From Lepidodermella squamata (lineage: Eukaryota > Animalia > Gastrotricha): 64,000 nucleotides of DNA. Position numbers and translations under genes: made by a program. How positions within the stretch are numbered: position 1 is the first letter of the stretch; each line of letters opens with the position of its first letter. The stretch is taken from the NCBI GenBank assembly GCA_047495785.1, contig JBLDXI010000057.1, forward strand, positions 124,001-188,000. The letters run 5' to 3'. The notes under the pieces were generated by a model. That model was given only the letters and a program-made list of their open reading frames with translations. It made no database searches and was not told the origin of the DNA. Below are positions 9,434 to 57,900 of the stretch, in pieces.

Positions 9434-9840
9434 TTGGGATTGTTGGAATAGCTCTCTGTAATTAATGAGGTAATTTTACGAAGTTTTTTCCAATTATTTT
9501 TCGCACTTCTGCTATTGACCCAATATCATTTGACACACTTGATGCACATTGCGCACAAAAAGTAATAATAATGCGAGATTTTGTCAAGTGAAAAATGGGG
9601 ATTAAAATAAATTTCCTGTTTTTCAGGTGCTACTTCGACTCAGAATTCGCGAATCGGAAAAATCAAGATGGAACACAAACAACTGCCGCCCTTAATAACG
9701 ATTTTTCACGATAAATAAATAAATAAACATCAATTCACGAGTTTTATTTTACTTCATTCATGAATATCAAGACAAAAAGCGTAATCGTTTTCTATATAGC
9801 AGCGAAATTAATAGGTTTGAAAAACAGTGAGTTTAAATTT

Positions 9841-9994
9841 AGGCTCCAGGGCGTGTCGCTTGTCTCACCAGGCCACGCCCAGTCATCGAAACTTGACCCA
9901 GATTCGTTTAGGCCCAGTCTGTCATAGAGTTACGCACGGCAGCGCAACCTAGACGTGACCTGGCGAGGTGTCATCAAGCGAGCACGGCTGGCCT
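9841..9994 (-). other. Extended multi-helix RNA structure carrying the SECIS at its tip
   Basis: CTCGCCAGGTCACGTCTAG pairs with CTGGGCGTGGCCTGGTGAG (19 bp incl. G-U); CGTG-c-TCGCTTG with CAAGCGACACG; CCAG/CTGG and AGGC/GCCT outer pairs; side hairpin GTTGCGC-tgccgt-GCGTAAC. Confidence 0.75.
9885..9925 (-). promoter_or_regulatory. Putative SECIS element in the TGR 3' region
   Basis: Minus strand reads A-TGAC / AGACTGGGCCT / AAA-CGAATCT / GGGTCAAGTTT / CGAT: AUGAN...NGAN quartet, 11-bp upper helix with one mismatch, unpaired AAA at the 5' side of the apical loop. Confidence 0.75.
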
Positions 9995-10022
9995 TTAATT
10001 GACCGCTGTTAGAATTCGCCAC

Positions 10023-12574
10023 TCAGCCACAGCACGACTGCAGGCCGAGCGATCGCCCGCTCGCCTTGCTGATCTCGAGAAGCACGAACATCTCAGAATT
10101 TGTCGGGTGAATGGCGACAGTATCGTCGAAATCTTGCTTCGTCGCACCGCGTTTCATCGCAACAGCATACCCTGAAAAAATAAAAAATAAAAATTTTAAA
10201 TATTTAAAAATTAAAAATTAATGAAAAAATTGAAATTTTGAGGAATTAAATTTAAAATTTAGATTTTAGAAATTTGGATTTTTAGGAAAAATACCTTGGA
10301 CGACTTCACCGGCGTTAGGGCCAAGGAAATGAAGGCCCACGACTCGCTCGTCGTCCTTGGAATTGCATACTATTTTCAGGTAGCAATTGATCGTATCCTG
10401 GGTGCCTCGGTGCTGTGAAGCCCGCATCGGAACCGACCATTCATAGGGCACGTAAGTGGCGTGGTAGACCTCGATGTTCTCAGCCCCGAAACGCGCGGTA
10501 GCCTCCTCCTCGGACAGGCCACAAGCGCCGTATTCAAGTGGGGTGAAAACGGTTGTAGCCACCTTGTCGTAGTCCATGTTTTCAGTCGCGTGGAAAAACA
10601 GCCGTCTCGCCAACAACTTGCCGGCTTGAATAGCAACCGGCGTCAACTCTGGCCGGCCATCCAGGACGTCGCCGATTGCGTATATGTTCGCAACATTGGT
10701 CTGCTCATTGACAGCCGGAATTTTCCCAGTTTTTTCGTTGAGTTTAACCCCAGCACCTTGCAGGTTGACGTCGCCGTAGATAGGCTCTCGGCCAATGGCG
10801 AAAATCACCGTTTCGAACTCGTCGGTTGTAGTCGAACCATCGCCGTGTTCGAACGTGACTCGAATACGACGTTCGCCGATTTTTTCCAGCTTTTTCGGGA
10901 CAGCAGGTCGCAGGAATTTTACGCCGGTGTCTAGCAGCACCTTGCCAATTCGCTCGGCCATGTCTTGATCGAAGCCGCGGAGCAGAATGGATCGAACGGC
11001 GATGGTTACGTCGAGGCCGAAACCGCGCAGGAATCCGGCGCATTCCAAGGCGACGTAAGACGCGCCGACGACCAGGGTTCGGCCAGGACTTTCGGGCAGC
11101 GAGAACAGGTCATCACTCGTGATTCCAAACTCACGGTCACCGGGAATATCTGAAATAAAAATGAAAAATGAAAATTAATAAATAGTCGAAAACTATTACG
11201 AATTAGTTTGAAGTCTGAAATTCAAAATGTTTCCTGAATACTTTTTTTCCTAAATACTTTTTGTAATTATTTTCATTAAATAACTTTAGGAACCTATTAT
11301 AGCTAGTTGGGATATTAACTCGGCCTCCCGAAATCCGGAAATCCCGAAAGATCGCTTCTTATTTTATAAAAATGTTATTTTTGTAGATTTGGAATTCCAA
11401 TATTAAAGCTTCATAGTTATTTATAGCACCATTATTTCGATGTCGCAAATTCATTGAGCAAAATTGAACTAGGTACAATTTTATTTCGCTCTAAACCCCG
11501 CTTCTCATTTGTCAGCGAATATATGAGACGTGTGCTAAAATAATTGCACATTATTCCATGCCGTCAAATAAAAAAGGGGAGTTGCAAACGAGAGCGCGAC
11601 TCTTCTCAAATTAAATTGTAATAAACTTTTTAAATTATTTAAATTCTAAATTCTCACCTGGGTACTTTGGACGAAGTCCGGTGGCGACCAAGATCTTGTC
11701 AGCCGTCACCACCCGTTTCTTGCCCTTCTTATCCGTCGCCTCCAGCGTGTGAGCGTCGATAAATCGCGCATACGAGTTAACGTACTCGACGTGGCCTTCA
11801 CGCAGCGAAACGCGGTACTTGAAGTTCGACGACATGATGTGCTCTTGAACCGTGTCGCGCAGCGCCTTCCAGTCGTGGTGCTGGTGGGCCTCGTCCGGGA
11901 TCTTCGTCCAACCGCTCGCCTTCGCATCGAGGATAGACTCACCGAGCAGCGATGCTTGGTGCATCAGCTTCTTCGGAATGCAGCCGACGTTGACGCAAGT
12001 GCCGCCGATGCCCCACGTCGTGCCGATCGGGGTCGGCTTCACGAAGTCGAACATGACGGTTTTGGCGCCGAGAATGGCGGCTTCTTTCGACGCGGCCAGA
12101 CCGCCAGAGCCGCCGCCAATAACAGCGAAATCGTACTCGTACGGGTGACGTTTCGGGCTTGATGCATGAGCCTTCAACGCCTCAGCGACCATTGCTTCGA
12201 GCTTGTTCTCCTGGATAATTTTGTCCAAGGCATCGAAACCGCCTTTACAAATTAAAAATTGTCAATTTAATTATTCTACTAATTTATTACAATTTCAAAA
12301 AATTTGAATTATTGAGCTTACCAATGAAAACTTTGTTAAAGAATATTTGAGGGACCGATCGCTGGCCAGTTTTATCGAAAAGCTCGAATTTTACAGCGAT
12401 GCCACTAGGCAGTTTATCGAGCACAACTTCGTGGTAATTGATGTCTCGCTGCTTGAGTGCTTCCTTAGCTTTGACGCAGAATGGGCAGGTTGTCTTCGAG
12501 AAAACAACAACAGGATGGTTGTTAATTTGATCGTTGATAAAGCTGAGGTAACCAGCTTTTTTCTGACTTGACAT
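10023..12574 (-). CDS. TXNRD/TGR: Thioredoxin glutathione reductase (Grx domain fused to large-type thioredoxin reductase), C-terminus SCCG
   Basis: Four exons: 12574-12322 (Grx, [14 protein letters not shown]), 12242-11658 (GGGSGG FAD motif, GGTCVNVGC), 11149-10295 ([15 protein letters not shown] motif, [28 protein letters not shown]), 10171-10023 (IHPTNSE, QSCCG-TGA). All junctions GT-AG and in phase. Confidence 0.95.
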
Positions 12575-14085: not shown

Positions 14086-15053
14086 CTATTGATAAGCCAT
14101 GACCATTTCGGCCGGTAGCTTTTCGCGAATGTAATCTTCGAACTCTGCTAGTAATTTTGGGTCTGTGAAATGCTCCTTCCAGTCCCCAACTTTGCCCTTA
14201 CGAATAAATTCCGCATCCGCACGCCAGGCTCCGTTCTTCAAAAAACGAAAATCATTATTTTTTATTGATTTTAAGGCGGAATTACCGATGCAAAGTACGA
14301 GTTGGCGTAGTCCTTCTTCTTCCGCATTGCCTCTACCGTGGTCGCCTCGCAAATTTTATCAACCAACTCGTCATCACAGTCGACTTGAATAAATTCAGCT
14401 ATCTTCTTGATTGTTGATTTCGGATTCTTCTTCAAATCTTCATAGCGGACGAATAAAATCGGCTTGCCTTCCTGTTTAGCCTTGAATATTTCGGTCAAAT
14501 GGCGATCGTATGGTCCCCAGAACACCTCGCCACGCATGAATTGCCGGACCATGAACTCAAATGGATGATCGTAAGGCCAGGCGATCATGTTTTGGTAGTG
14601 GTGGTACAGCGAGGTGACAACATCCTTAGGATTACGGTACAGGTACAGGACCTTGGCCTTGAAGGCATTTTTAGGTAGAAGCGGCGAGGAGCAGTGGGTG
14701 TCTAGAACACGCGGTGACGGCATTGTAGCGATACGCTTCAGCTGATCAGCAGGCGCCGGCATTTCAATTAACGGCCGTCGTAGTATTTCAGGGATTTCGT
14801 CGAAATTACGAGTGACTAACAACTGGACTATGTAACACAGCCAGTGATTGCCGCTTTTGGGGAAAGCTGAAATCAGCACGTCGTTGCTTTCAAATGGGAA
14901 GTTGTAGGCTCCTGGCCAGAAGAACGGCGTGATTACAGGCAGGTAATAGCCGCGGAATTGAGCCAATTCCATGCCATCCCGAACTGTGCCCAGCTCGCTA
15001 ATAGCGGCATTGATATCAGGGTTGAAAAGTGTTTTCCATTCGAAATCAGCCAT
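14086..15053 (-). CDS. Cytosolic PAPS-dependent sulfotransferase (Sulfotransfer_1, SULT1-like), 2 exons
   Basis: 5'-PSB FPKSGNHW, catalytic His in DTHC, 3'-PB RNPKDVVTSLYH, RYEDLK, C-terminal RKGKVGDWK. A ~50-nt intron (gtaatt...gaag, ~14286-14236) joins the two ORFs. Confidence 0.93.
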
Positions 15054-15579
15054 GCTCTCACGACCTATTTTCTGTTTATACAAAATCAGAACTAGGGTTT
15101 CGGCTAAATTCAGAGGTGTTTTATCTTGTTTTTATCGGTCTTATCTCAGTCATTGTTATCAGTCCTATTATACAGTCCGGTTCCGGATATTCCCAATTCC
15201 CACTGCATCCCGTGAACAGAGCTGACCAATCAATCATCAAGATCTTGACCTTCGATCATTCAACATTTCATTGTCTTCTTCATCCATCTAGCCATCATGA
15301 AGCTTCATTGATGCGTAAACTAGACTTGTGTTGACCTTACCTGTTAATAAATTTGCATTTGACGTCATGTTAGGTCCATTAAAATGGTGTTATCCCTTTT
15401 AATAGCAGGCTTATGCGCCCTCAGATGCTGACCACGAGGCGAATATCACCCACGTAATTCGCCATGGATAGCGCCAGGCGAATGCTGCTGCATGCAAAAA
15501 AATCCCAAATGCACTTGTTTCTGTTCAGCGACACCAGTCTGAGAGTGTTTAATTTCTGAATTTTATCAACAAAATTGCT

Positions 15580-27504: not shown

Positions 27505-30283
27505 ATGGAGCTACTTATAATGACATTCGCTAGCGTTTTGCCGTTAGCCTCCAGCCTGGTACCGATGAATACACCAAGGCCGCGTTACGCAATGTCAACC
27601 GTATTTTCAAACTACTTGAAACTTTCCAACTCATCTCTCGACATCGAACTGCCGAAATATGTCGATATAGTAGGTGAGGGTCGAAGGTATATTGTCAAAG
27701 TAGTCACAAGCGTAATTTACAATTCGCCCGACTACCCGATCGGGCCGGTTTCTACGACGACAGTGAGTTTCGCCCTAGACCGCCTCCGAACTTTACCAAA
27801 TTGGTTGCCGAACTATGAACTTGTGTTCGAAATCATTGATGACCAGGTAAAGCCGTCTCTTTTTTAATAATGAAGTTAAAATCCGGCTACAGTGCACAGA
27901 TGACGTTACGGTCAAAGTCATTACTGAAATACTAAGAGAAAATGGAGACGTGGAAGACAGATTACCTCTTATGGCCCTAACGGAATGCTCCGCCCAGCCG
28001 CAATCCATATCTGCTTTAATGGCTAAACCTAACAATATGATTGCTGTAAGTTGCTTAGTTATGTCTCTTCGACGAGATTCAATTAATAAAATTGCGAAGA
28101 TATCTGCCTATGCGAGCGATACCAAGCTATTCTTCGAGCGGGGAAAATTCTCAAATTACATACCTTTAGGGGAGCGAGGTGACTACTACTGCTTGGCCAT
28201 GGCAGATTTCATTGCTAAAATGGGTTGGAAACGTGTTGCTTTGATTTCGGATACGCACCTGTATGATAACATGGTAATAACTCATTTTGAAGGCAATCAC
28301 TTTATTCGATATTTTTTGCAGCTGGACGCTAGTTTTCTCGATGCGCTAGATCGTCGAAACATGTCGTTAGTATATTACGGCAAGGTTCCTCTGGGATCGG
28401 AAAATGAAGAAGAATTGGATACAACATTCAAAGAGCTGGCTAGATCTCAACCCAGAATTATTGTACTCCACGTTTATGGTATTCAGGTGACGATGCCCTG
28501 CTTCCTACATCGCTACGGTCTTCACGGGCCAAGTTACGTCATCCTCACATTTTCGTTTCTCCTCTCATTTGATGAAAACTCCCCCGTCCCTCCTTTTCTT
28601 TCACACTGGTGCAGCCAAGGCATGTTCGCCGATGTTTTCAGCAGTTTCATATTTGCTGCCGATGCGCCCCTTAGCGAAATCTACGGCGAAAACAAAACAG
28701 ATTCAAGCGGGGTTACATTAGCAGACTTTTACAACCATTTGACCTCGACGGTTGATAGCCCAGAGAAAGCAGTCGGCTGGGACTACTGGGGTCCGGCATA
28801 CTACGACCGCCACATGGCAATAGGGCTAATATTGAACGAAACAGAAAATATTCTGCGAAGCAGTAAGCTTTTCTACTCCACGTCTTATTATTCTAATATC
28901 GTTTATTCTACCAAGGAAACTCTAGCCTTTCGGATTGGACAACGTCCAAACTAAAACTAAGCATGGTAAACAGCTCTGAAATCTTAAAAGTAATTGAGAA
29001 AGCGGCAGGTGCTTTTTCGTTTACTGGCTTTAAAGGCGAATATTCATACGACGTTGCAACCAAATGGTCCTCGGGTTGTATGCCGATTATTTTTCGGCAA
29101 GGCGTTATCGATATCGTGAATGGCTCGACGAAATCGCGAACTCAGATGGTTGGATACTACAAATCCAACGAAAAACCTAACGGACCGATGATTATTCTAA
29201 GGGATCGATTCGCGTGGAAGACTTTCAATAAGCAACCTCCAAAAGATGCCTTGGTTGTAGAGAGGGTAATTGTTCCTCAGATTTCGGAAGGGGCTAATGT
29301 CGCAATGAAAGGTTTTTTGTGATGATCAGAAGTTATTTCCATCTTTCTCTTCTTTTTATTCAGCTTTGGCAAGCGTCATAACGATCTACATGCTGCTATT
29401 GGTATTGGCGTACAAATTTGGCCGTCTTAGGCCACTCAAAACCAGCGATTTGATTAGCATGTTTGGAAATATTGCTATTTTGTGCTATGTCTTCGCGGTT
29501 TCTCCTGGTCTCTCGAGCGATCTCCAAATCAGCTGTACTGCATCGATAATTTTCATATTGTCCGGTTCTGTCATCCTTTTCTATGGTTTACTGCTGAGAT
29601 TGAGACCTGACGAACACCTCAGACCATTTCAAATTTGGGAGGGAATGCTGCTAACATCAATTCCTTTATTCGTCGCAAGTTTGACTTTGAGCCCTGTGAA
29701 ATCAGCACCATTCTACTATCCTATCAAACAGTCGACTACTGACATGAGCTTGGCTTTTCAGATGGTCCGGTTCGATTGCCAAATCGCTCAATCAATAGGC
29801 GCTTCAAAGACCGCCCTGGGGCTCATGATTGCGGCTATAATTTTGTTCATAGTTTTGCTCGGGCGGACTTTGTTGCTAGCTTTCCTCAACCAATCGCGTT
29901 ATAAGATGTTGACCGCTAAACAGTATCAGTCACTACCGATAAGTCGCGGGGAGTTGCGGCGTCTCAAAGCTCTGACAAAATACTCGTTATTTATTTACTT
30001 CGTTTTTACGATTTTCATCGCCGCCTTGTTGATTGGCACCTTATTTGGAACTGACGGGCGGGCTGTTATAGAACTGACTTCATCTGTTGCGATAATTGTC
30101 ATGATAGCGCACCTGACTGTCGTTACTTCGGATCGTCTTTCGAATAGTGCAGTTCCGGCTGTATCTCGACCGGATACAGGGGTGGCAAATGTGCGAGTTG
30201 GCAGTGGCGGTGTGCGCCAAAATAGCTTCGACGTCTCCAACGCGAAGTTGTCATCTTTTCGGGGCCGTTCACGCCTACACTGA
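27505..30283 (+). CDS. Divergent class C GPCR, GABA-B-like architecture (Venus flytrap + 7TM, no Cys-rich domain), multi-exon
   Basis: Signal peptide; LPNYELVFEIIDDQ|C, KMGWKRVALISD, PRIIVL, C..HRYGLHGPSYV, FTGFKG, WKTFNKQPPKD, then about seven hydrophobic segments with an extracellular-loop Cys (RFDCQ). Confidence 0.8.
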
Positions 30284-31431
30284 ACGCTACTGCTTCCGAG
30301 GCGATATAATGGGTTCTAATTATAAAAAATGTCAGTGCAATAATAGCTCTAATAGAATTTGAGTCATTGTCTGAAAGACTAATGCTAAGATAACGCACCT
30401 GTGAAACGTAAAAATCATGTTTCCCCACTGTACAAAACGTGTTGATGACAAGTGAGCAATCTGGTGTGTGTTATAATAGAATGTAGATTATCAGATTACC
30501 TATCCTATAGAGCAAATAAATGTGCCACATGTGTAAAATCGAACGCAAATTCTAGTTCTATTTTCCGAGTAACTTTTTCTGAATATCTGAAAGCGAATGC
30601 AAACTTGCCTGTTGCAGAATCAAAGCTGGAGCGGAACCAAATGTCATTTTCAATTTTTGAATTATTTTTATAGATAATGGCAGTGCCGCGTTCTGGAAGT
30701 TAGGACCAGGCCTTGTAAAGAATATCGCAAAGATTTTGAGCGTTTCAACAGTTTATTTTGTGTTTTCAAATTAATCGTGAAATTCCAGAATATTCAGTAA
30801 ACGAAGAAGCCAATTTTATTTTGATCGAGCATTTCCTTTAGCTTTGATTAAACCAGGGTGCATTCAACTGCGAGAATCAACGGCAACATTTCTAATTGAA
30901 ATTGGCAGACTTCAAGGAAGCATCAGGTGGGTTTTCAGGTTGATGGTTCCAACAATTTTCGTGAATAATTCAACAACACCTGGCACTCAGTAAATATGTT
31001 GGAATCATCGAATTGTTATGCATCGTCCCCGTTATCTCCAATATAACCATGTTACGCCTCTTCAGATAAAATTCGGCACGAATGAGGCTATCGCTGAGAA
31101 CTTGTTTGATAACATGCTTTTATCATGCTATTATTTACAGTAGTTGCGGTAATTTGTTTTGTTAGCGTGCATGAAATGTCAGGTGTGCGGGGTCAAATCG
31201 CCTAATTTTATTTAAACGCCTAAAATCACAACGTGCGTGATAAAAAGTAATCGCCCAACTATTCCCATCATGTATTGCATGATAAATGCAACGAGATGTA
31301 GCAAAAACGACATTCACGCTTCGTTTTATGAATATATTAACACCTATTCGCGAATAAATGGGGCGGCACTGAGTAATACAGACCGGAATGACAGCACGAC
31401 TCATCATCAGCTCATTCCTGCGAATTCTCAG

Positions 31432-32865
31432 ATGGCCTTCTTCGTGCTTCTAGCTTTAATAGTCGTAATTCTCATCTATGGGTGGCGCAGATACCTGCTC
31501 GACCTCAGATTCCGACTTCCACCTGGACCTCTGCCGATTCCCTTCCTGGGCAATTTAAGCATCTCGAAGAACAACCGCAGGAAACCTTGGGCTAATTTTG
31601 CAAAATTCGGCCCTATTTCAACCCATTATCAAGGCCAATCTCGCCTCGTCGTCATTAATGACGTTAAAATAATGCAACAAGCTCTACTCGACCGGTCTCA
31701 GCCTCTGATCAATCGACCCGATTTCGGGCCAATGGCGTGTAAAATGTTCAAACTCGTCAATACCGCAAACGGCGAAATGTGGCGGAAATTGCGCCGATTT
31801 TCAGTTCAAGCCATGCGCGATTTCGGCATGGGCAAACCAGCCATGGTCTCGGCTATTCACCAGGAGCTCGGTTATTTATTTGAAATTATTGATAAAAACA
31901 ACGGCGAGGTGACAGATTTGCTTGTTTACAAAGCCTCGGCAAACATTTTAGCTCCTATGTTCATCGGGAAACGTTACGAATATGACGAGACGAATTTTTC
32001 GAATTTAATTCAAGCCGTTCAAGACTTCAATCTCTGCGAGGACTACTCCTTCTATATTTTTCCAATTTTAAGGCAATTTCGACTCCCGTCAAGCACTGCC
32101 ATGCTGCGGAAGGCTAAATCTATCACTCAAATTTTACTCGAGCAAAATGTGAAAGAAAAACATGGAAAATATGAAAAGCCGGCTCAAAATTTCGTCGATT
32201 TGTACCAGGCTCAAAGTTTCCCGTTCGAGATCAATTTAGATGCCTTCGCAGCTTATGTTGCTGATTTATTCGGAAATGCGATAGACGCCTCGGGGAACAA
32301 CTTGAATTGGTGCCTGCTTCTCCTCGCTAAATTTCCAGCCATTCAGCAGCGTTGCCACGAGGAACTGGACCGCGAAATCGGGCGAGATAGCCAATTATCG
32401 CTAGAAGACCGCGAGCGACATGTCTACCTTGAAGCTGTCATATACGAATCATTCCGCTTCGGAGTTACCGCGCCACTAGCCCTGCCCCATGCGACGCTGG
32501 AATCGGCGGCAGAAATCGGCGGCTATAAAGTTCCACCACAGACATTAGTTCGCTACAACATCTGGGCCGTGCATAACGACCCGGCTTATTGGGGCGATCC
32601 GGAATCGTTCAGGCCTGAGCGATTTATAAGCGATGAAGACGGCCGATTGTTGAAGCATTACACTCACTTCATTCCGTTCGGAATCGGGGCTAGGAGTTGC
32701 CTTGGAGAACCGCTGGCTCGGCAACTCCAGTTTCTGTTTGTCGCATCTTTGCTACAACAATACGAATTCAGGCTTGATGGCGATGTTGACCTAGATAGCG
32801 GCGCTCAAATATCATTTCATGCCCCGCCGCCTTTCAAACTGCTGGCAACAAAAAGGTTGTGGTAA
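31432..32865 (+). CDS. Cytochrome P450, CYP2 clan, intronless CDS, atypical I-helix
   Basis: N-terminal anchor, LPPGPLPIPFLGN, WRKLRRF, ExxR (ESFR), FRPERF, heme motif FGIGARSCLG; ATG 31432 directly after a ctcag acceptor-like sequence. Confidence 0.95.
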   Translation: MAFFVLLALIVVILIYGWRRYLLDLRFRLPPGPLPIPFLGNLSISKNNRRKPWANFAKFGPISTHYQGQSRLVVINDVKIMQQALLDRSQPLINRPDFGPMACKMFKLVNTANGEMWRKLRRFSVQAMRDFGMGKPAMVSAIHQELGYLFEIIDKNNGEVTDLLVYKASANILAPMFIGKRYEYDETNFSNLIQAVQDFNLCEDYSFYIFPILRQFRLPSSTAMLRKAKSITQILLEQNVKEKHGKYEKPAQNFVDLYQAQSFPFEINLDAFAAYVADLFGNAIDASGNNLNWCLLLLAKFPAIQQRCHEELDREIGRDSQLSLEDRERHVYLEAVIYESFRFGVTAPLALPHATLESAAEIGGYKVPPQTLVRYNIWAVHNDPAYWGDPESFRPERFISDEDGRLLKHYTHFIPFGIGARSCLGEPLARQLQFLFVASLLQQYEFRLDGDVDLDSGAQISFHAPPPFKLLATKRLW

Positions 32866-54955: not shown

Positions 54956-57900
54956 TTACATGCGGGTCATGTATATTGGTGGGATACTGCCGCGTTTGTG
55001 TCCAGTCAATAAATCCCCAAAGCCCTCCGTATGAGAGTATCCAAAACCCGTTCCCGAGTCTCGGAATGAATCGCCGCTCAGACGAGGTCGAGTTCGCCGG
55101 CGCATGGATGTCGTCGATCGCACACTTCCCGAAATCGGTAGAGATACAGTATCTCGAATTGGCGCAGGGTGCATTTCTACGCTCTGCTGAGTCGTCAATT
55201 TTGGTGCCGCTTCCTGCTGTTCCGCTTCCTTTCGCTTCTTGCCACCTCCCAGCAGCAGCCGGAATACTTTGACTATGAAAATATCTCTTTCGCCATTTTC
55301 TTTCTCTCTGACTGCGTCTGTCAGCGTTGGCATAATGCAGCGAACAGCGTAGGACAATGCGATGCCAGGTAGAATCGCCATCGTAATCGCGCTCAAGGAA
55401 GCAAGCCACGTTGGGCCAAAATTCAGAGCAGCATATTGGGCGCCTTCGTAATCGTACTGAGCTCCGAATAGCCAGTAAACAACTGGGCCGAAAGCAAAAA
55501 CGCTGATCCAATAGATCAGAAGGGAACCCCATAATGTGATATGGCTCCAAATTGTCCAGTAGGCTGTTTCCTGGGCACAGCGAATCGTAACCAATGACAG
55601 TGTGGTGAATCCTAAGGTGAATGAAAAAGTTCGAAGATCAGCCAACTCAACTGAAGCTGCGGCCCAACGGGATCCACTTGACGGAATATTGTACGCCGAT
55701 GTCCCATAATGAACAAAGAAAACACAGGCAGCTGAGTACAGACTGTCGATGAAAGTCAATGTTAACGAGCGAATGTTGAGCATCGAATTAGACAGGCCGA
55801 CTTCATACAGCAGGGGGAAAGAGAGCAAACCAGTCGAGCTGACATCCTGGTCGCTAGCACCGAGAATAATGCATGGCAAAGCCGTGTAGATTGTATTGAA
55901 TAGACCAACAAATAGAGGGTCAAATGCAGTCTAGAAGTCACATGAGCGGTTATAAAACGTAAAGATATAATAATACTATTTACTTGAGCAGTACCGCCGC
56001 AAAAAAACGCGAAGAAGAAATGCCCCAGTGTGAATGTAAGGTTCTTGTAGAGAAAATAAAGCACAAATGTCGCCATTCGAGCATAGCTCCAGCGGCCGTG
56101 GACAAGGAGTAATTTGGCAAGAAACCGAAACTGGGCGATAGCATAGTCACTAGATAGTACAGCTTGAAGCCCTTCTCGTCCAGCTATTCCAACACCGATA
56201 TTCGCAGCTGTTCGAAGGGAAAATTCATGTAAGTAGGCACTGAGGCAATAAATTTACCTCGAATCATGGGCACATCGTTTGCTCCGTCTCCAATAGCGCA
56301 AGTTCTCGCATGCAGCTGGCGACGAAATAGCTCAACCACTCTCGCCTTAGATAACGGGGTCATCCGGCAGCAAATTACGGTAGAACACCGCCCGGCAACC
56401 TTAACGAATAGATCAGTCAGATTACTTCCACCGACCTCGTTGCCCTCTTCATCGTCTTCTGTGTCTGAAAATACGTCGCTTCCAGTTGCATTCGTTGGAA
56501 TAGTCCCCGAGCTGGTTGGGCTTTCTGTGGCTTTCTTCTTATTCAAGTGAGGCAAGATGGAATCCTAAATAAAGTAGAAAATGTGCAAAAGCTTCAATTA
56601 ATAATGCAAATTTTACCAATGCCCCGCCGGTTATTGATAGCCCGAAAACTGGACCCTCGCCATTTTGAGCCTCGCTTTCGCGTGGTTTCTTATCAGTCGA
56701 GAAGAAGCCGTCGAATGTTTCCGCCATGTTCGTGCGAAAACGCTGTAAAGCACTCATGTCACGTCTTGCTACACTGGGGCGAGGTGGAGCTTTGTACGGC
56801 TTGCCTTCCATTTCCTGGTACAACCGTGCCAACATACCTGGAACGCGGTGTTTCGCAGCGTCATCGTCGTTTATCACGGTTAAATTTGTGTCTGCAGCCA
56901 GCAAATTGCAAGAATACCCAATATTGATAGCCGTCTCTTGCTTGTCTCCAGTTAGAACCCACATCCTAATACCAGCATTAAGAAGCTGCTTAATAGCCAG
57001 CGGAACCCCGTCTTGCAGCTTATCCTCGATGGCCGTCGCGCCGATTAGAGTAAAATCACGCTCTATTTCGTTGTAGACCTCTCGAACCTTTTCGTCTCGT
57101 TCACCAATCGCAGACTCGGCTTCTTCGCATCTAGCCTTCCACTGAGCAAACTCATGCTCCTTCAAGATGCGCATTCCAAATACCAAAGTACGAAGTCCCT
57201 TCTCTGCGAAGTCTCTCAAGTGACCGGTGGTTCTTTCGATCATTTCCTCTTGGTTCGGGGCTGCGAACGGAAACAAAGACGAATCGGCACCTTTGCAATA
57301 CAAAATTATGACCGATTCGTCATCAGGGTCACGAATGATCACGGACATCCGTTTTCGCACGTTATCAAAATCGAGAAGATGCAACAGCTGAAACTTGATG
57401 ATGCGAGACGATCTGTTGGTATTTGGAACAGGCTCTGCTATTGTTAAAGATTCAGCATCACGTTCCTGAAGTACGTAGCCGAATGACCTTGCCCCTGATA
57501 TTAAAGCGTTCTCGTCAGGCGACTGAGCTTGGTATATGAATGTTGTAGAGCCATCTGTTGAGTCTGGCCTCGGTACACGACTTGGTACAACCGTGCTGCA
57601 TAGTGCCATAAGTCTAAAATAGTGCTGCAGCATTCTCCCGTGAGTTGAAAGCGAGCCTAAATTAATTAGCCGATTAACTACATGTTTCTATATCGAAGTT
57701 TGAAAATATGTTACCTTGTTGCAAAATTGCTTCGACCAAACGACTGTCGTAAAATACAAAAGATGGATCTGCGTCGGGGGTGAGGGTCGAAATCAAGTCG
57801 AGACGCGGGAAAGTTGCGCCCTCTTCATATGGGTCGACATCAGTACCAGTGGCCTCGTCCAAAACATCACCGTATTTCACGCCGTAAATCGAACATTTAT

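Follow-up and report, generated by a model that had tools for sequence, protein, structure and literature searches.

Known TGRs end in G-C-U-G with Sec, whereas the TGR (Grx-TrxR) gene described here, from the minus strand of a 64-kb stretch of the Lepidodermella squamata genome (hereafter the window, meaning the whole stretch that was analysed), ends in S-C-C-G, with Cys at the Sec position. Its stop codon is TGA, and an intact SECIS element lies downstream of it. The question that this locus raises is what such an element does behind a gene whose Sec codon is gone, and in particular whether it can turn the stop itself into a Sec codon, as was first proposed for this TGA. We will argue that the alternative offered along with that proposal, a SECIS left behind by a Sec-to-Cys change, fits best.

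The Cys-type TGR gene

The gene has four exons and an intact ORF of 613 codons, and its spliced CDS (12574-12322 + 12242-11658 + 11149-10295 + 10171-10023; 1842 nt) translates with one stop, the TGA at 10025-10023. The final codons, TCG TGC TGT GGC TGA, read S-C-C-G-stop on the minus strand, and TGT is the minor Cys codon of the gene (two, against eight TGC). The original prediction had described this ending, with Cys at the usual Sec position, and had found no other in-frame TGA; codons, coordinates and the single stop are all borne out. Accordingly, no in-frame UGA stands at the conserved Sec/Cys position within the ORF, the only TGA being the stop. An alternative Sec-encoding last exon was not seen either: the sole TGA trinucleotide between the stop and the SECIS core is out of frame, in the ATGA at 9974-9971.

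All the domains and catalytic motifs of a TGR are found, namely the Grx domain with its CxxC (CPFC), the class I pyridine nucleotide-disulfide oxidoreductase part with CVNVGC, and the dimerisation domain with the His/Glu dyad in IHPTNSE. The same fusion of Grx to a large TrxR, with CPxC, CVNVGC and the HPxxxE dyad, is known from mammalian TXNRD3 and from flatworm TGR (Schistosoma, Echinococcus; PDB 2v6o, 3h4k), and exon 3 scores 266 bits to Schistosoma TGR and 306 bits to rat TrxR1. Since the C-terminal redox pair at the homologous positions is a vicinal Cys-Cys rather than Cys-Sec, the gene is a Cys-type TGR. The coordinates of all features are collected in Table 1.

Cys-type large TrxRs occur in Drosophila (SCCS) and other insects and in C. 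elegans (TRXR-2, GCCG); endings of both kinds are also present among the database representatives of large TrxR. In these enzymes, as in the window TGR, a vicinal Cys-Cys replaces Cys-Sec, and the Ser before the Cys pair is common to the window TGR and the insect enzymes. Their genes are not known to carry a SECIS, and several belong to lineages in which Sec use has been lost or reduced. The window gene differs from them in all these respects, because it keeps an intact SECIS, resides in a Sec-using organism and coexists with a Sec-type paralogue.

Table 1. Features of the TGR gene and of its downstream region (positions within the window)
Feature	Position	Strand	Basis
Exon 1: start codon and glutaredoxin domain, CPFC active site, GT donor	12322..12574	-	PF00462 Glutaredoxin, E 7.8e-18
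Exon 2: FAD-binding part, CVNVGC redox centre	11658..12242	-	PF07992, E 1.2e-16
Exon 3: NADPH-binding part and start of dimerisation domain	10295..11149	-	rat TrxR1 1h6v, E 2.6e-90; PF07992, PF00070, PF02852
Exon 4: end of dimerisation domain (IHPTNSE), tail …LGLQSCCG, TGA stop	10023..10171	-	translation; aligned to paralogue
TGC TGT, Cys-Cys pair; TGT (10031-10029) at the position of the paralogue's Sec TGA	10029..10034	-	alignment
TGA stop, two codons past the former Sec position, 97 nt before SECIS ATGA	10023..10025	-	sequence
30 open codons and TAA, hypothetical extension, probably untranslated 3'UTR	9930..10022	-	sequence; codon score
Helix I, 5' strand, extended, under the SECIS	9949..9990	-	folds: -71 kcal/mol, z -5.4
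Side hairpin, 7 bp, 6-nt loop, between helix I and SECIS core, includes TAA	9929..9948	-	fold
SECIS proper: ATGA 9925-9922, helix II arms 9920-9909/9900-9889, AAA at 5' edge of apical loop, GA 9887-9886	9883..9928	-	Rfam SECIS_1, 18.5 bits; pattern scan; paralogue motif
Helix I, 3' strand, extended	9847..9882	-	folds
AATAAA, likely polyadenylation signal	9744..9749	-	read from sequence

The SECIS element and the open frame before it

A SECIS core had been placed about 100 nt downstream of the stop, and it is present there, with ATGA at 9925-9922, AAA at 9909-9907 and GA at 9887-9886. The 12-nt arms of helix II form standard or G-U pairs at 10 of the 11 scored positions, the exception being one G.A mismatch. 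No sign of decay was found in the core, the spacing, the AAA or helix II, and helix I is very stable: upon folding, 9990-9949 pairs with 9882-9847 over 33 bp, including an uninterrupted run of 19 bp, and the stability exceeds that expected for the composition both over 146 nt (z -5.4) and over 301 nt (z -3.5). The possibility that this helix is a repeat or a transposon was rejected, since it is single-copy in the genome. The small hairpin between helix I and the SECIS core has a counterpart at the matching place in the Sec-type paralogue, and the 3' arms of the three TGR SECIS elements (those of the window gene, the paralogue and a metagenomic relative) differ in length in the RNAalifold alignment.

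It is extremely improbable that an ordinary 3'UTR has produced this element by coincidence, although its Rfam SECIS_1 score, 18.5 bits (E 3.3 in 2 kb), falls short of the cut-off of 35. The model is a poor judge in this lineage, with two sites genome-wide, and misses altogether the genuine SECIS of the Sec-type paralogue, locus L010, as well as that of the metagenomic relative, L012. A pattern scan over both strands of the window (128 kb) returned a single match, the one behind the TGR gene, where 0.85 is expected per 128 kb of Markov sequence and about 0.002 for a 300-nt 3'UTR. Moreover, the position and the motif are common to the SECIS of the paralogue, and this homology by itself contradicts chance. 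Judged from the sequence, the SECIS exceeds chance, and we take it to be a real and intact element that descends from a Sec-type ancestor.

Regarding its presence in the transcript, the AATAAA, as the likely polyadenylation signal, would give a 3'UTR about 290 nt long that includes the SECIS. Of the words of the whole gene, 0.66 occur in run X2 (labelled 'RNA?'), vs 0.85 of those of the exon-rich stretch; these shares fit a spliced transcript with most of the 3'UTR, and they differ by roughly 2 SE from what one stopping short of the SECIS would give, which is suggestive at best.

The frame does stay open for 30 codons after the TGA (VANSNSGQLKASRARLMTPRQVTSRLRCRA), as had been pointed out, and ends with TAA at 9932-9930, just before the SECIS core. 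However, neither its length nor its codon usage shows coding constraint. An open frame of this length is expected by chance with a probability of (61/64)^30, or about 0.24, and the codon score of the extension, -0.205, falls under that of every in-frame CDS window (minimum 0.037) and is typical of off-frame sequence. In addition, two thirds of the extension (codons 11-30) go to make up the side hairpin together with the 5' strand of helix I, and therefore translating the extension would unfold the base of the SECIS.

Sec decoding and the Sec-type paralogue

The genome was searched for tRNA-Sec, SecS and SPS2, as had been recommended, and all were found: three tRNA-Sec(UCA) genes (70.5 bits in Rfam; they went uncalled by ARAGORN and were identified by Rfam and by direct reading of the anticodon), SepSecS, and an SPS2 that is itself Sec-type (LKG-U-GCKV). 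A Sec-type GPx (VASQ-U-G) with a SECIS is present as well. From this gene set, the genome is read as one that decodes Sec with working machinery.

The Sec-type paralogue, on contig C24, ends in SAC-TGA-GGT-TAA, and its tail, …LGKSAC-U-G, aligns position for position with the …LGLQSCCG of the window gene, the Sec TGA falling on the TGT. The metagenomic relative (P0151) has the same SACUG-TAA ending, and thus Sec stands at the aligned position in both. The SECIS likewise occupies a homologous place in the 3'UTR, the distance to its ATGA being 106 nt from the TGT in the window and 103 nt from the paralogue's Sec TGA, and the two copies have in common the motif ATGAC.GA....GCCTAAAC, the remaining 3'UTR being unalignable. 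The dS between the Cys and the Sec copies is about 2.8, near saturation, and the arms of helix II differ from those of the paralogue yet pair perfectly save for the one G.A mismatch; we therefore infer that pairing was under selection for a long time after the duplication.

In the tree, the three genes group as (Cys copy,(Sec copy, Sec relative)) with support of 100/99, nested among Sec-type animal TrxR1/TGR, and therefore Sec is ancestral; their TGR clade branches outside Trichoplax, cnidarians and bilaterians. The protein branch length of the Cys copy is 0.53 vs 0.15, and its dimerisation domain bears an insertion of five to nine residues, a candidate adaptation to the Sec-to-Cys change. Two further differences concern the end of the gene. 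The stable hairpin directly after the Sec codon, which the Sec-type paralogue and its relative both have (z -4.4 and -9.0), is absent in the Cys copy (z +0.6), and the Cys copy stops at TGA, vs TAA in both Sec-type relatives. Because of the latter, the TGA stop is probably a second change, one that restored a UGA within reach of the SECIS.

An orthologue of the Cys copy was not found. The best match was 63% in the representative search, and in two word-indexed searches it was P0151, which reaches 64% against the Cys copy and 77% against the Sec copy; the exon-4 ORF, looked up as an exact sequence, gave no match, the exon 4 queries being 10026-10163 or 10026-10157. A scan of metagenomes with the last-exon alignment returned just bacterial glutathione reductases and protist Sec-type TRs. 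For a P450 encoded elsewhere in the window, the matches retrieved were all at about 30% identity.

Why an intact SECIS follows a Cys codon

We consider it probable, though far from settled, that the window gene is a TGR paralogue converted from Sec to Cys fairly recently, that its SECIS is a young relic, and that any Sec insertion at the stop is unselected. An ancestral Sec-type TGR (…C-U-G-stop with a SECIS) would have undergone duplication in this lineage, after which the contig C24 copy would have stayed Sec-type, while in the window copy the Sec TGA would have become TGT, yielding an SCCG enzyme with a vicinal Cys-Cys, independent of selenium and terminating at the TGA. Since the inherited SECIS is still structurally intact, this copy has probably encoded a selenoprotein during most of its history. 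Some ribosomes may decode the stop as Sec and extend the protein by about 30 residues, given an intact SECIS 97 nt after a UGA stop in a Sec-decoding organism, and such a product would be a by-product rather than a designed isoform. The gene model, the Cys codon, the homology and integrity of the SECIS, the Sec machinery and the Sec-type paralogue are observations, whereas the direction and the recency of the change, like any insertion at the stop, are conclusions that we infer.

Residual SECIS elements after a Sec-to-Cys change are documented (PMC2500217, PMC7409322). In the fossil SECIS of Drosophila SelK (PMC2500217) and in canarypox GPx4, which has Cys and a SECIS (reviewed in PMC7409322), the Sec codon is lost or replaced by Cys, the SECIS remains recognisable, and the situation is read as a recent conversion. 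The Drosophila fossils, however, show lost conservation, whereas the SECIS of the window is undecayed, has a 33-bp helix beneath it and is preceded by a UGA stop at a spacing compatible with recoding. Such preservation means that the conversion was recent or that selection has retained the element. Fast decay would be expected of a neutral relic, yet this SECIS is undamaged and its helix I looks maintained, and the long branch of the Cys copy could mean an old functional divergence of the two copies rather than a recent change.

Retention by selection is what the dual-use proposal offers: the UGA at 10025-10023 would either terminate, giving SCCG, or become Sec, giving C-C-G-U with a basic tail of 30 residues, in a ratio that follows the selenium supply. 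Part of this proposal stands, since the Sec machinery, a real SECIS and a workable distance are all there. The SECIS elements of TR1/TGR act on UGAs among the final few codons of the ORF, with a minimum spacing of 51 nt (PMC3737529), and the stop of the window gene, 97 nt before the ATGA and two codons from the ancestral Sec site, lies within that zone, as do the late UGAs served by the 3'UTR SECIS elements of Euplotes crassus TR, human TR1 and mouse TGR (PMC3737529). For these reasons, namely an intact SECIS, Sec machinery and suitable spacing near the ancestral site, Sec insertion at the stop is mechanistically possible. Those three enzymes, however, recode a conserved Sec UGA inside the ORF, whereas the only UGA of the window gene is its predicted stop, and insertion there is hypothetical. 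The strong structure of the SECIS region, the TGA in place of the TAA of the Sec-type relatives and the frame that stays open to just before the core also speak for dual use. What finds no support is a selected CxxU isoform or a selenium switch: the open frame is within chance length, its codon usage is non-coding, its codons 11-30 are explained by RNA helices, and the gene lacks the hairpin that its Sec-type relatives have after the UGA. Furthermore, the redox pair is at the extreme C-terminus in all sampled large TrxRs, and we reason that a 31-residue addition would probably hinder the swing of the tail to the active site of the partner. Overall, a selected dual-use stop is unlikely, and it is slightly less likely still that the UGA is read as Sec often enough to matter biologically, which would produce a selenium-dependent, extended C-C-G-U isoform beside the selenium-independent SCCG enzyme.

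The undecayed SECIS could also be accounted for if the TGT reflected an assembly error or one allele only, with TGA in the species or on its other haplotype; the gene would then be an ordinary Sec-type TGR ending in S-C-U-G. One assembly was examined, and TGT, the minor Cys codon of the gene, is a single substitution away from TGA. Against this, substitution errors are uncommon in polished assemblies, the assembly holds no second haplotig copy of the 3'UTR of the window TGR, and the Logan contigs of run X1, which may be the source sample, contain all sampled 31-mers. A Sec-type reading would also leave two UGAs two codons apart (…C-U-G-UGA), an arrangement seen in neither Sec-type relative, and we regard it as decidedly improbable. 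Much the same doubt applies to the idea that something other than recoding preserves the SECIS and the long helix, for example SBP2/L7Ae-type binding or recognition of the 19-bp duplex, which would control the Cys-TGR mRNA in its stability, localisation or translation. For its composition the structure is exceptionally stable; it is also single-copy and hence no repeat element, and it has been retained despite the loss of the Sec codon; however, the literature searched offered no precedent for such a role, and retention is more simply explained by a recent conversion.

If the reading as a converted paralogue with a relic SECIS is right, the locus is an ordinary though neat case of a known process; if instead the stop were redefined, it would be a natural selenoprotein whose Sec occupies a former stop codon. 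Sec-to-Cys conversions are common, but a perfect SECIS behind one in an organism that still decodes Sec is rarely seen, and the gene bears on how fast unused SECIS elements decay. It also bears on what a TGR requires to change from Sec to Cys, for which the candidates are the Ser before the Cys pair, the dimerisation-domain insertion and the long protein branch. Finally, with the Sec-type paralogue as an internal control, the pair provides a natural test of whether a SECIS alone redefines a genuine stop in vivo.

The Cys-type gene and its Sec-type relatives

The window's gene is a spliced ORF of four exons, a clean 1842 nt with 613 codons plus the stop. Domain searches show that its product joins a glutaredoxin (Grx) domain (PF00462, E 7.8e-18), bearing CPFC, to a large thioredoxin reductase (TrxR) module that contains CVNVGC, the NADPH domain, and the dimerisation domain with IHPTNSE; exon 3 matches rat TrxR1 with E 2.6e-90 and Schistosoma TGR with E ~1e-78. 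As the original prediction had it, the last codons on the minus strand read TCG TGC TGT GGC TGA, with the TGT at 10031-10029 and the sole in-frame TGA at 10025-10023, after which a further 30 codons are free of stops, up to the TAA at 9932-9930. A loop of the dimerisation domain (window 10400-10450, minus strand, residues ~513-531) carries extra residues: six relative to the Sec-type paralogue, nine relative to the metagenomic relative, and eight relative to rat TrxR1.

Only one further large TrxR-type gene occurs in the genome (L010, on contig C24); it is also Grx-fused, is 69% identical, and has a single fused exon in place of the window gene's exons 2 and 3. This paralogue ends K-S-A-C-TGA-GGT-TAA, i.e., SAC-U-G, and its tail, KASGKPLGKSACUG, aligns residue for residue with that of the Cys copy, so that the window's TGT falls exactly at the Sec position. 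The ATGA of its type-2 SECIS (L010:2660) is 103 nt downstream of the Sec TGA; in the Cys copy the corresponding ATGA is 106 nt downstream of the TGT, or 100 nt when counted from the first base of the stop codon. A metagenomic relative, P0151 (L012-L015), is 78% identical to the Sec copy and shares its SAC-U-G-TAA ending and type-2 SECIS. Upstream of its TrxR module, L012:6773-8443 has two separate glutaredoxin ORFs, which could represent a split first exon or alternative first exons.

In a maximum-likelihood tree, these genes form a (Cys copy,(Sec copy, relative)) clade with 100/99 support, nested among Sec-type animal TrxR1/TGR; this nesting indicates that Sec is the ancestral state. The topology places the duplication before the split from the relative, and the near saturation of synonymous differences between the copies (pS 0.73, dS ~2.8; dN 0.26) makes it old. 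Protein representative, word-indexed, and metagenome searches found no orthologue of the Cys copy.

Features of the window and of related loci in the genome assembly (G000) and metagenomic DNA
Feature	Location	Strand	Remarks
Exon 1	window 12574-12322	-	part of spliced four-exon ORF
Exon 2	window 12242-11658	-	part of spliced four-exon ORF
Exon 3	window 11149-10295	-	part of spliced four-exon ORF
Exon 4	window 10171-10023	-	part of spliced four-exon ORF; ends with TGA stop
Helix I	window 9990-9949 with 9882-9847	-	predicted; 33 bp including 19-bp uninterrupted run
Side hairpin	window 9948-9929	-	predicted; 7 bp
Sulfotransferase	window 14271-15083	-	neighbour
ANF-receptor-type ligand-binding domain gene	window 27950-28954	+	neighbour
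CYP2-clan P450	window 31237-32865	+	neighbour; single exon, ~30% identical to any named protein
P-type cation ATPase	window 56539-57633	-	neighbour
Sec-type TGR paralogue	L010:150-2720 (C24, ~624,000-626,600)	+	Grx CPYC; ends SAC-TGA-GGT-TAA
Post-UGA hairpin, paralogue	L010:2565-2601		-27 kcal/mol, z -4.4
Post-UGA hairpin, metagenomic relative	L012:11654-11755		-57 kcal/mol, z -9.0; 65-nt insertion
tRNA-Sec(UCA)	C24:2817779-2817864	-	
tRNA-Sec(UCA)	C24:2819371-2819456	+	
tRNA-Sec(UCA)	C24:3874590-3874675	+	
Selenophosphate synthetase	L021 (C33:1822199-1823011)	+	LKG-U-GCKV (SPS2 type)
GPx	L017 (C15, ~4,465,000-4,466,554)		VASQ-U-GFT; SECIS 29.7 bits

The SECIS element and Sec decoding

The canonical-looking SECIS core proposed at 9925-9885 is borne out: ATGA (9925-9922) is followed by 12 nt, AAA (9909-9907) and the apical loop, after which a 12-nt 3' arm leads to GA (9887-9886), and the arms pair at 10 of 11 scored positions, with one G.A mismatch. 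A simple pattern-plus-pairing scan of both strands of the 64-kb window returns this site only, the chance expectation being 0.85 matches per 128 kb of Markov sequence, or ~0.002 per 3'UTR. Rfam SECIS_1 gives it 18.5 bits (cut-off 35), but the model has low sensitivity in this lineage: it misses the SECIS both of the Sec-type paralogue and of the metagenomic relative, and finds just two sites in the whole 121-Mb genome (34.6 and 29.7 bits), one of them in the GPx gene. Both are recovered by our scan. The SECIS of the Cys copy is real and inherited.

The 3'UTRs of the two copies align only around ATGAC.GA....GCCTAAAC. In the Cys copy, the predicted fold of 9990-9845 reaches -71 kcal/mol (z -5.4; none of 200 shuffles as stable), is kept when embedded in 301 nt (z -3.5), and leaves the SECIS core strands unpaired at the junction. 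The paralogue is likewise predicted to have a small hairpin just 5' of the ATGA and a helix I, so this architecture is common to both copies although their sequences differ. A repeat origin of the Cys-copy 3'UTR was rejected, as it is single-copy in the genome.

Regarding Sec machinery, which the original prediction asked to have checked, tRNA-Sec, SecS (SepSecS, three exons), and SPS2 are present, and the organism decodes Sec. There are three tRNA-Sec genes, all identical, which reach 70.5 bits (cut-off 47), with the anticodon loop CTTCAAA and a T run after each; two of them form an inverted pair 1.5 kb apart. None of the three is called by ARAGORN. Some 45 sub-threshold matches were rejected as ordinary tRNA-Ser(UGA) genes, present in dozens of identical copies, and contigs C15 and C29 hold dense tRNA clusters (e.g., nine genes in 1.6 kb at L006:960-2540). 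Of two SelD/SPS loci, one has LKG-TGA-GCKV, which is the Sec site of SPS2; the second, SelD-like, on C46, is without TGA.

Origin of the Cys-type copy

The reading that we consider probable is a Sec-to-Cys converted paralogue: a Sec-type TGR would have been duplicated and the window's copy switched from Sec to Cys, giving an enzyme that would work with a Cys-Cys tail and leaving the SECIS as a presumed relic. It coincides with the fossil SECIS after a recent Sec-to-Cys change offered earlier as the alternative, even though the element is without any decay. The arms of helix II differ from those of the paralogue and yet pair well, which implies that pairing was under selection long after duplication, and the intact SECIS argues that the conversion was recent relative to it.

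The leading proposal had been a selected dual-use stop, at which UGA both terminates and is recoded as Sec. Its premises hold, in that the UGA is at a workable distance from an intact SECIS in a Sec-decoding organism, and the complete lack of SECIS decay, the unusually strong helix I, and TGA here versus TAA in both Sec-type relatives all favor it; however, the extension does not look translated, and we regard this proposal as unlikely. A run of 30 open codons arises by chance with a probability of about one in four. The codon-usage score of the extension (-0.205) is within the off-frame distribution (mean -0.32) and below every in-frame 30-codon CDS window (minimum 0.037), in a small test whose training set included the window's own CDS. 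Codons 11-30 are the 5' strand of helix I plus the side hairpin, which encloses the TAA, so RNA pairing accounts for the sequence. Moreover, in the Sec-type genes a very stable hairpin, resembling a Sec-redefinition element, begins a few bases after UGA-GGU-UAA and is kept between the two species with compensatory changes, whereas nothing comparable follows the stop of the Cys copy (z +0.6). That the TGT is an allele or an assembly artefact seems just as improbable.

Under the converted-paralogue reading, some Sec insertion at the UGA stop would be plausible as a by-product, though less likely than not, because the UGA is two codons past the former Sec position, with the SECIS core 97 nt away, and because TR1 and TGR SECIS elements allow insertion at the natural site and nearby sites (Turanov et al., PMC3737529, who cite a minimum spacing of 51 nt).

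The Ser before the Cys-Cys pair of the window's protein recalls the insect enzymes that end SCCS. Cys-type large TrxRs are already known, as seen from the C-termini of the database representatives compared, and so are residual SECIS elements (PMC2500217, PMC7409322). What stands out in the Cys copy is a pristine SECIS together with a UGA stop and a coexisting Sec paralogue.
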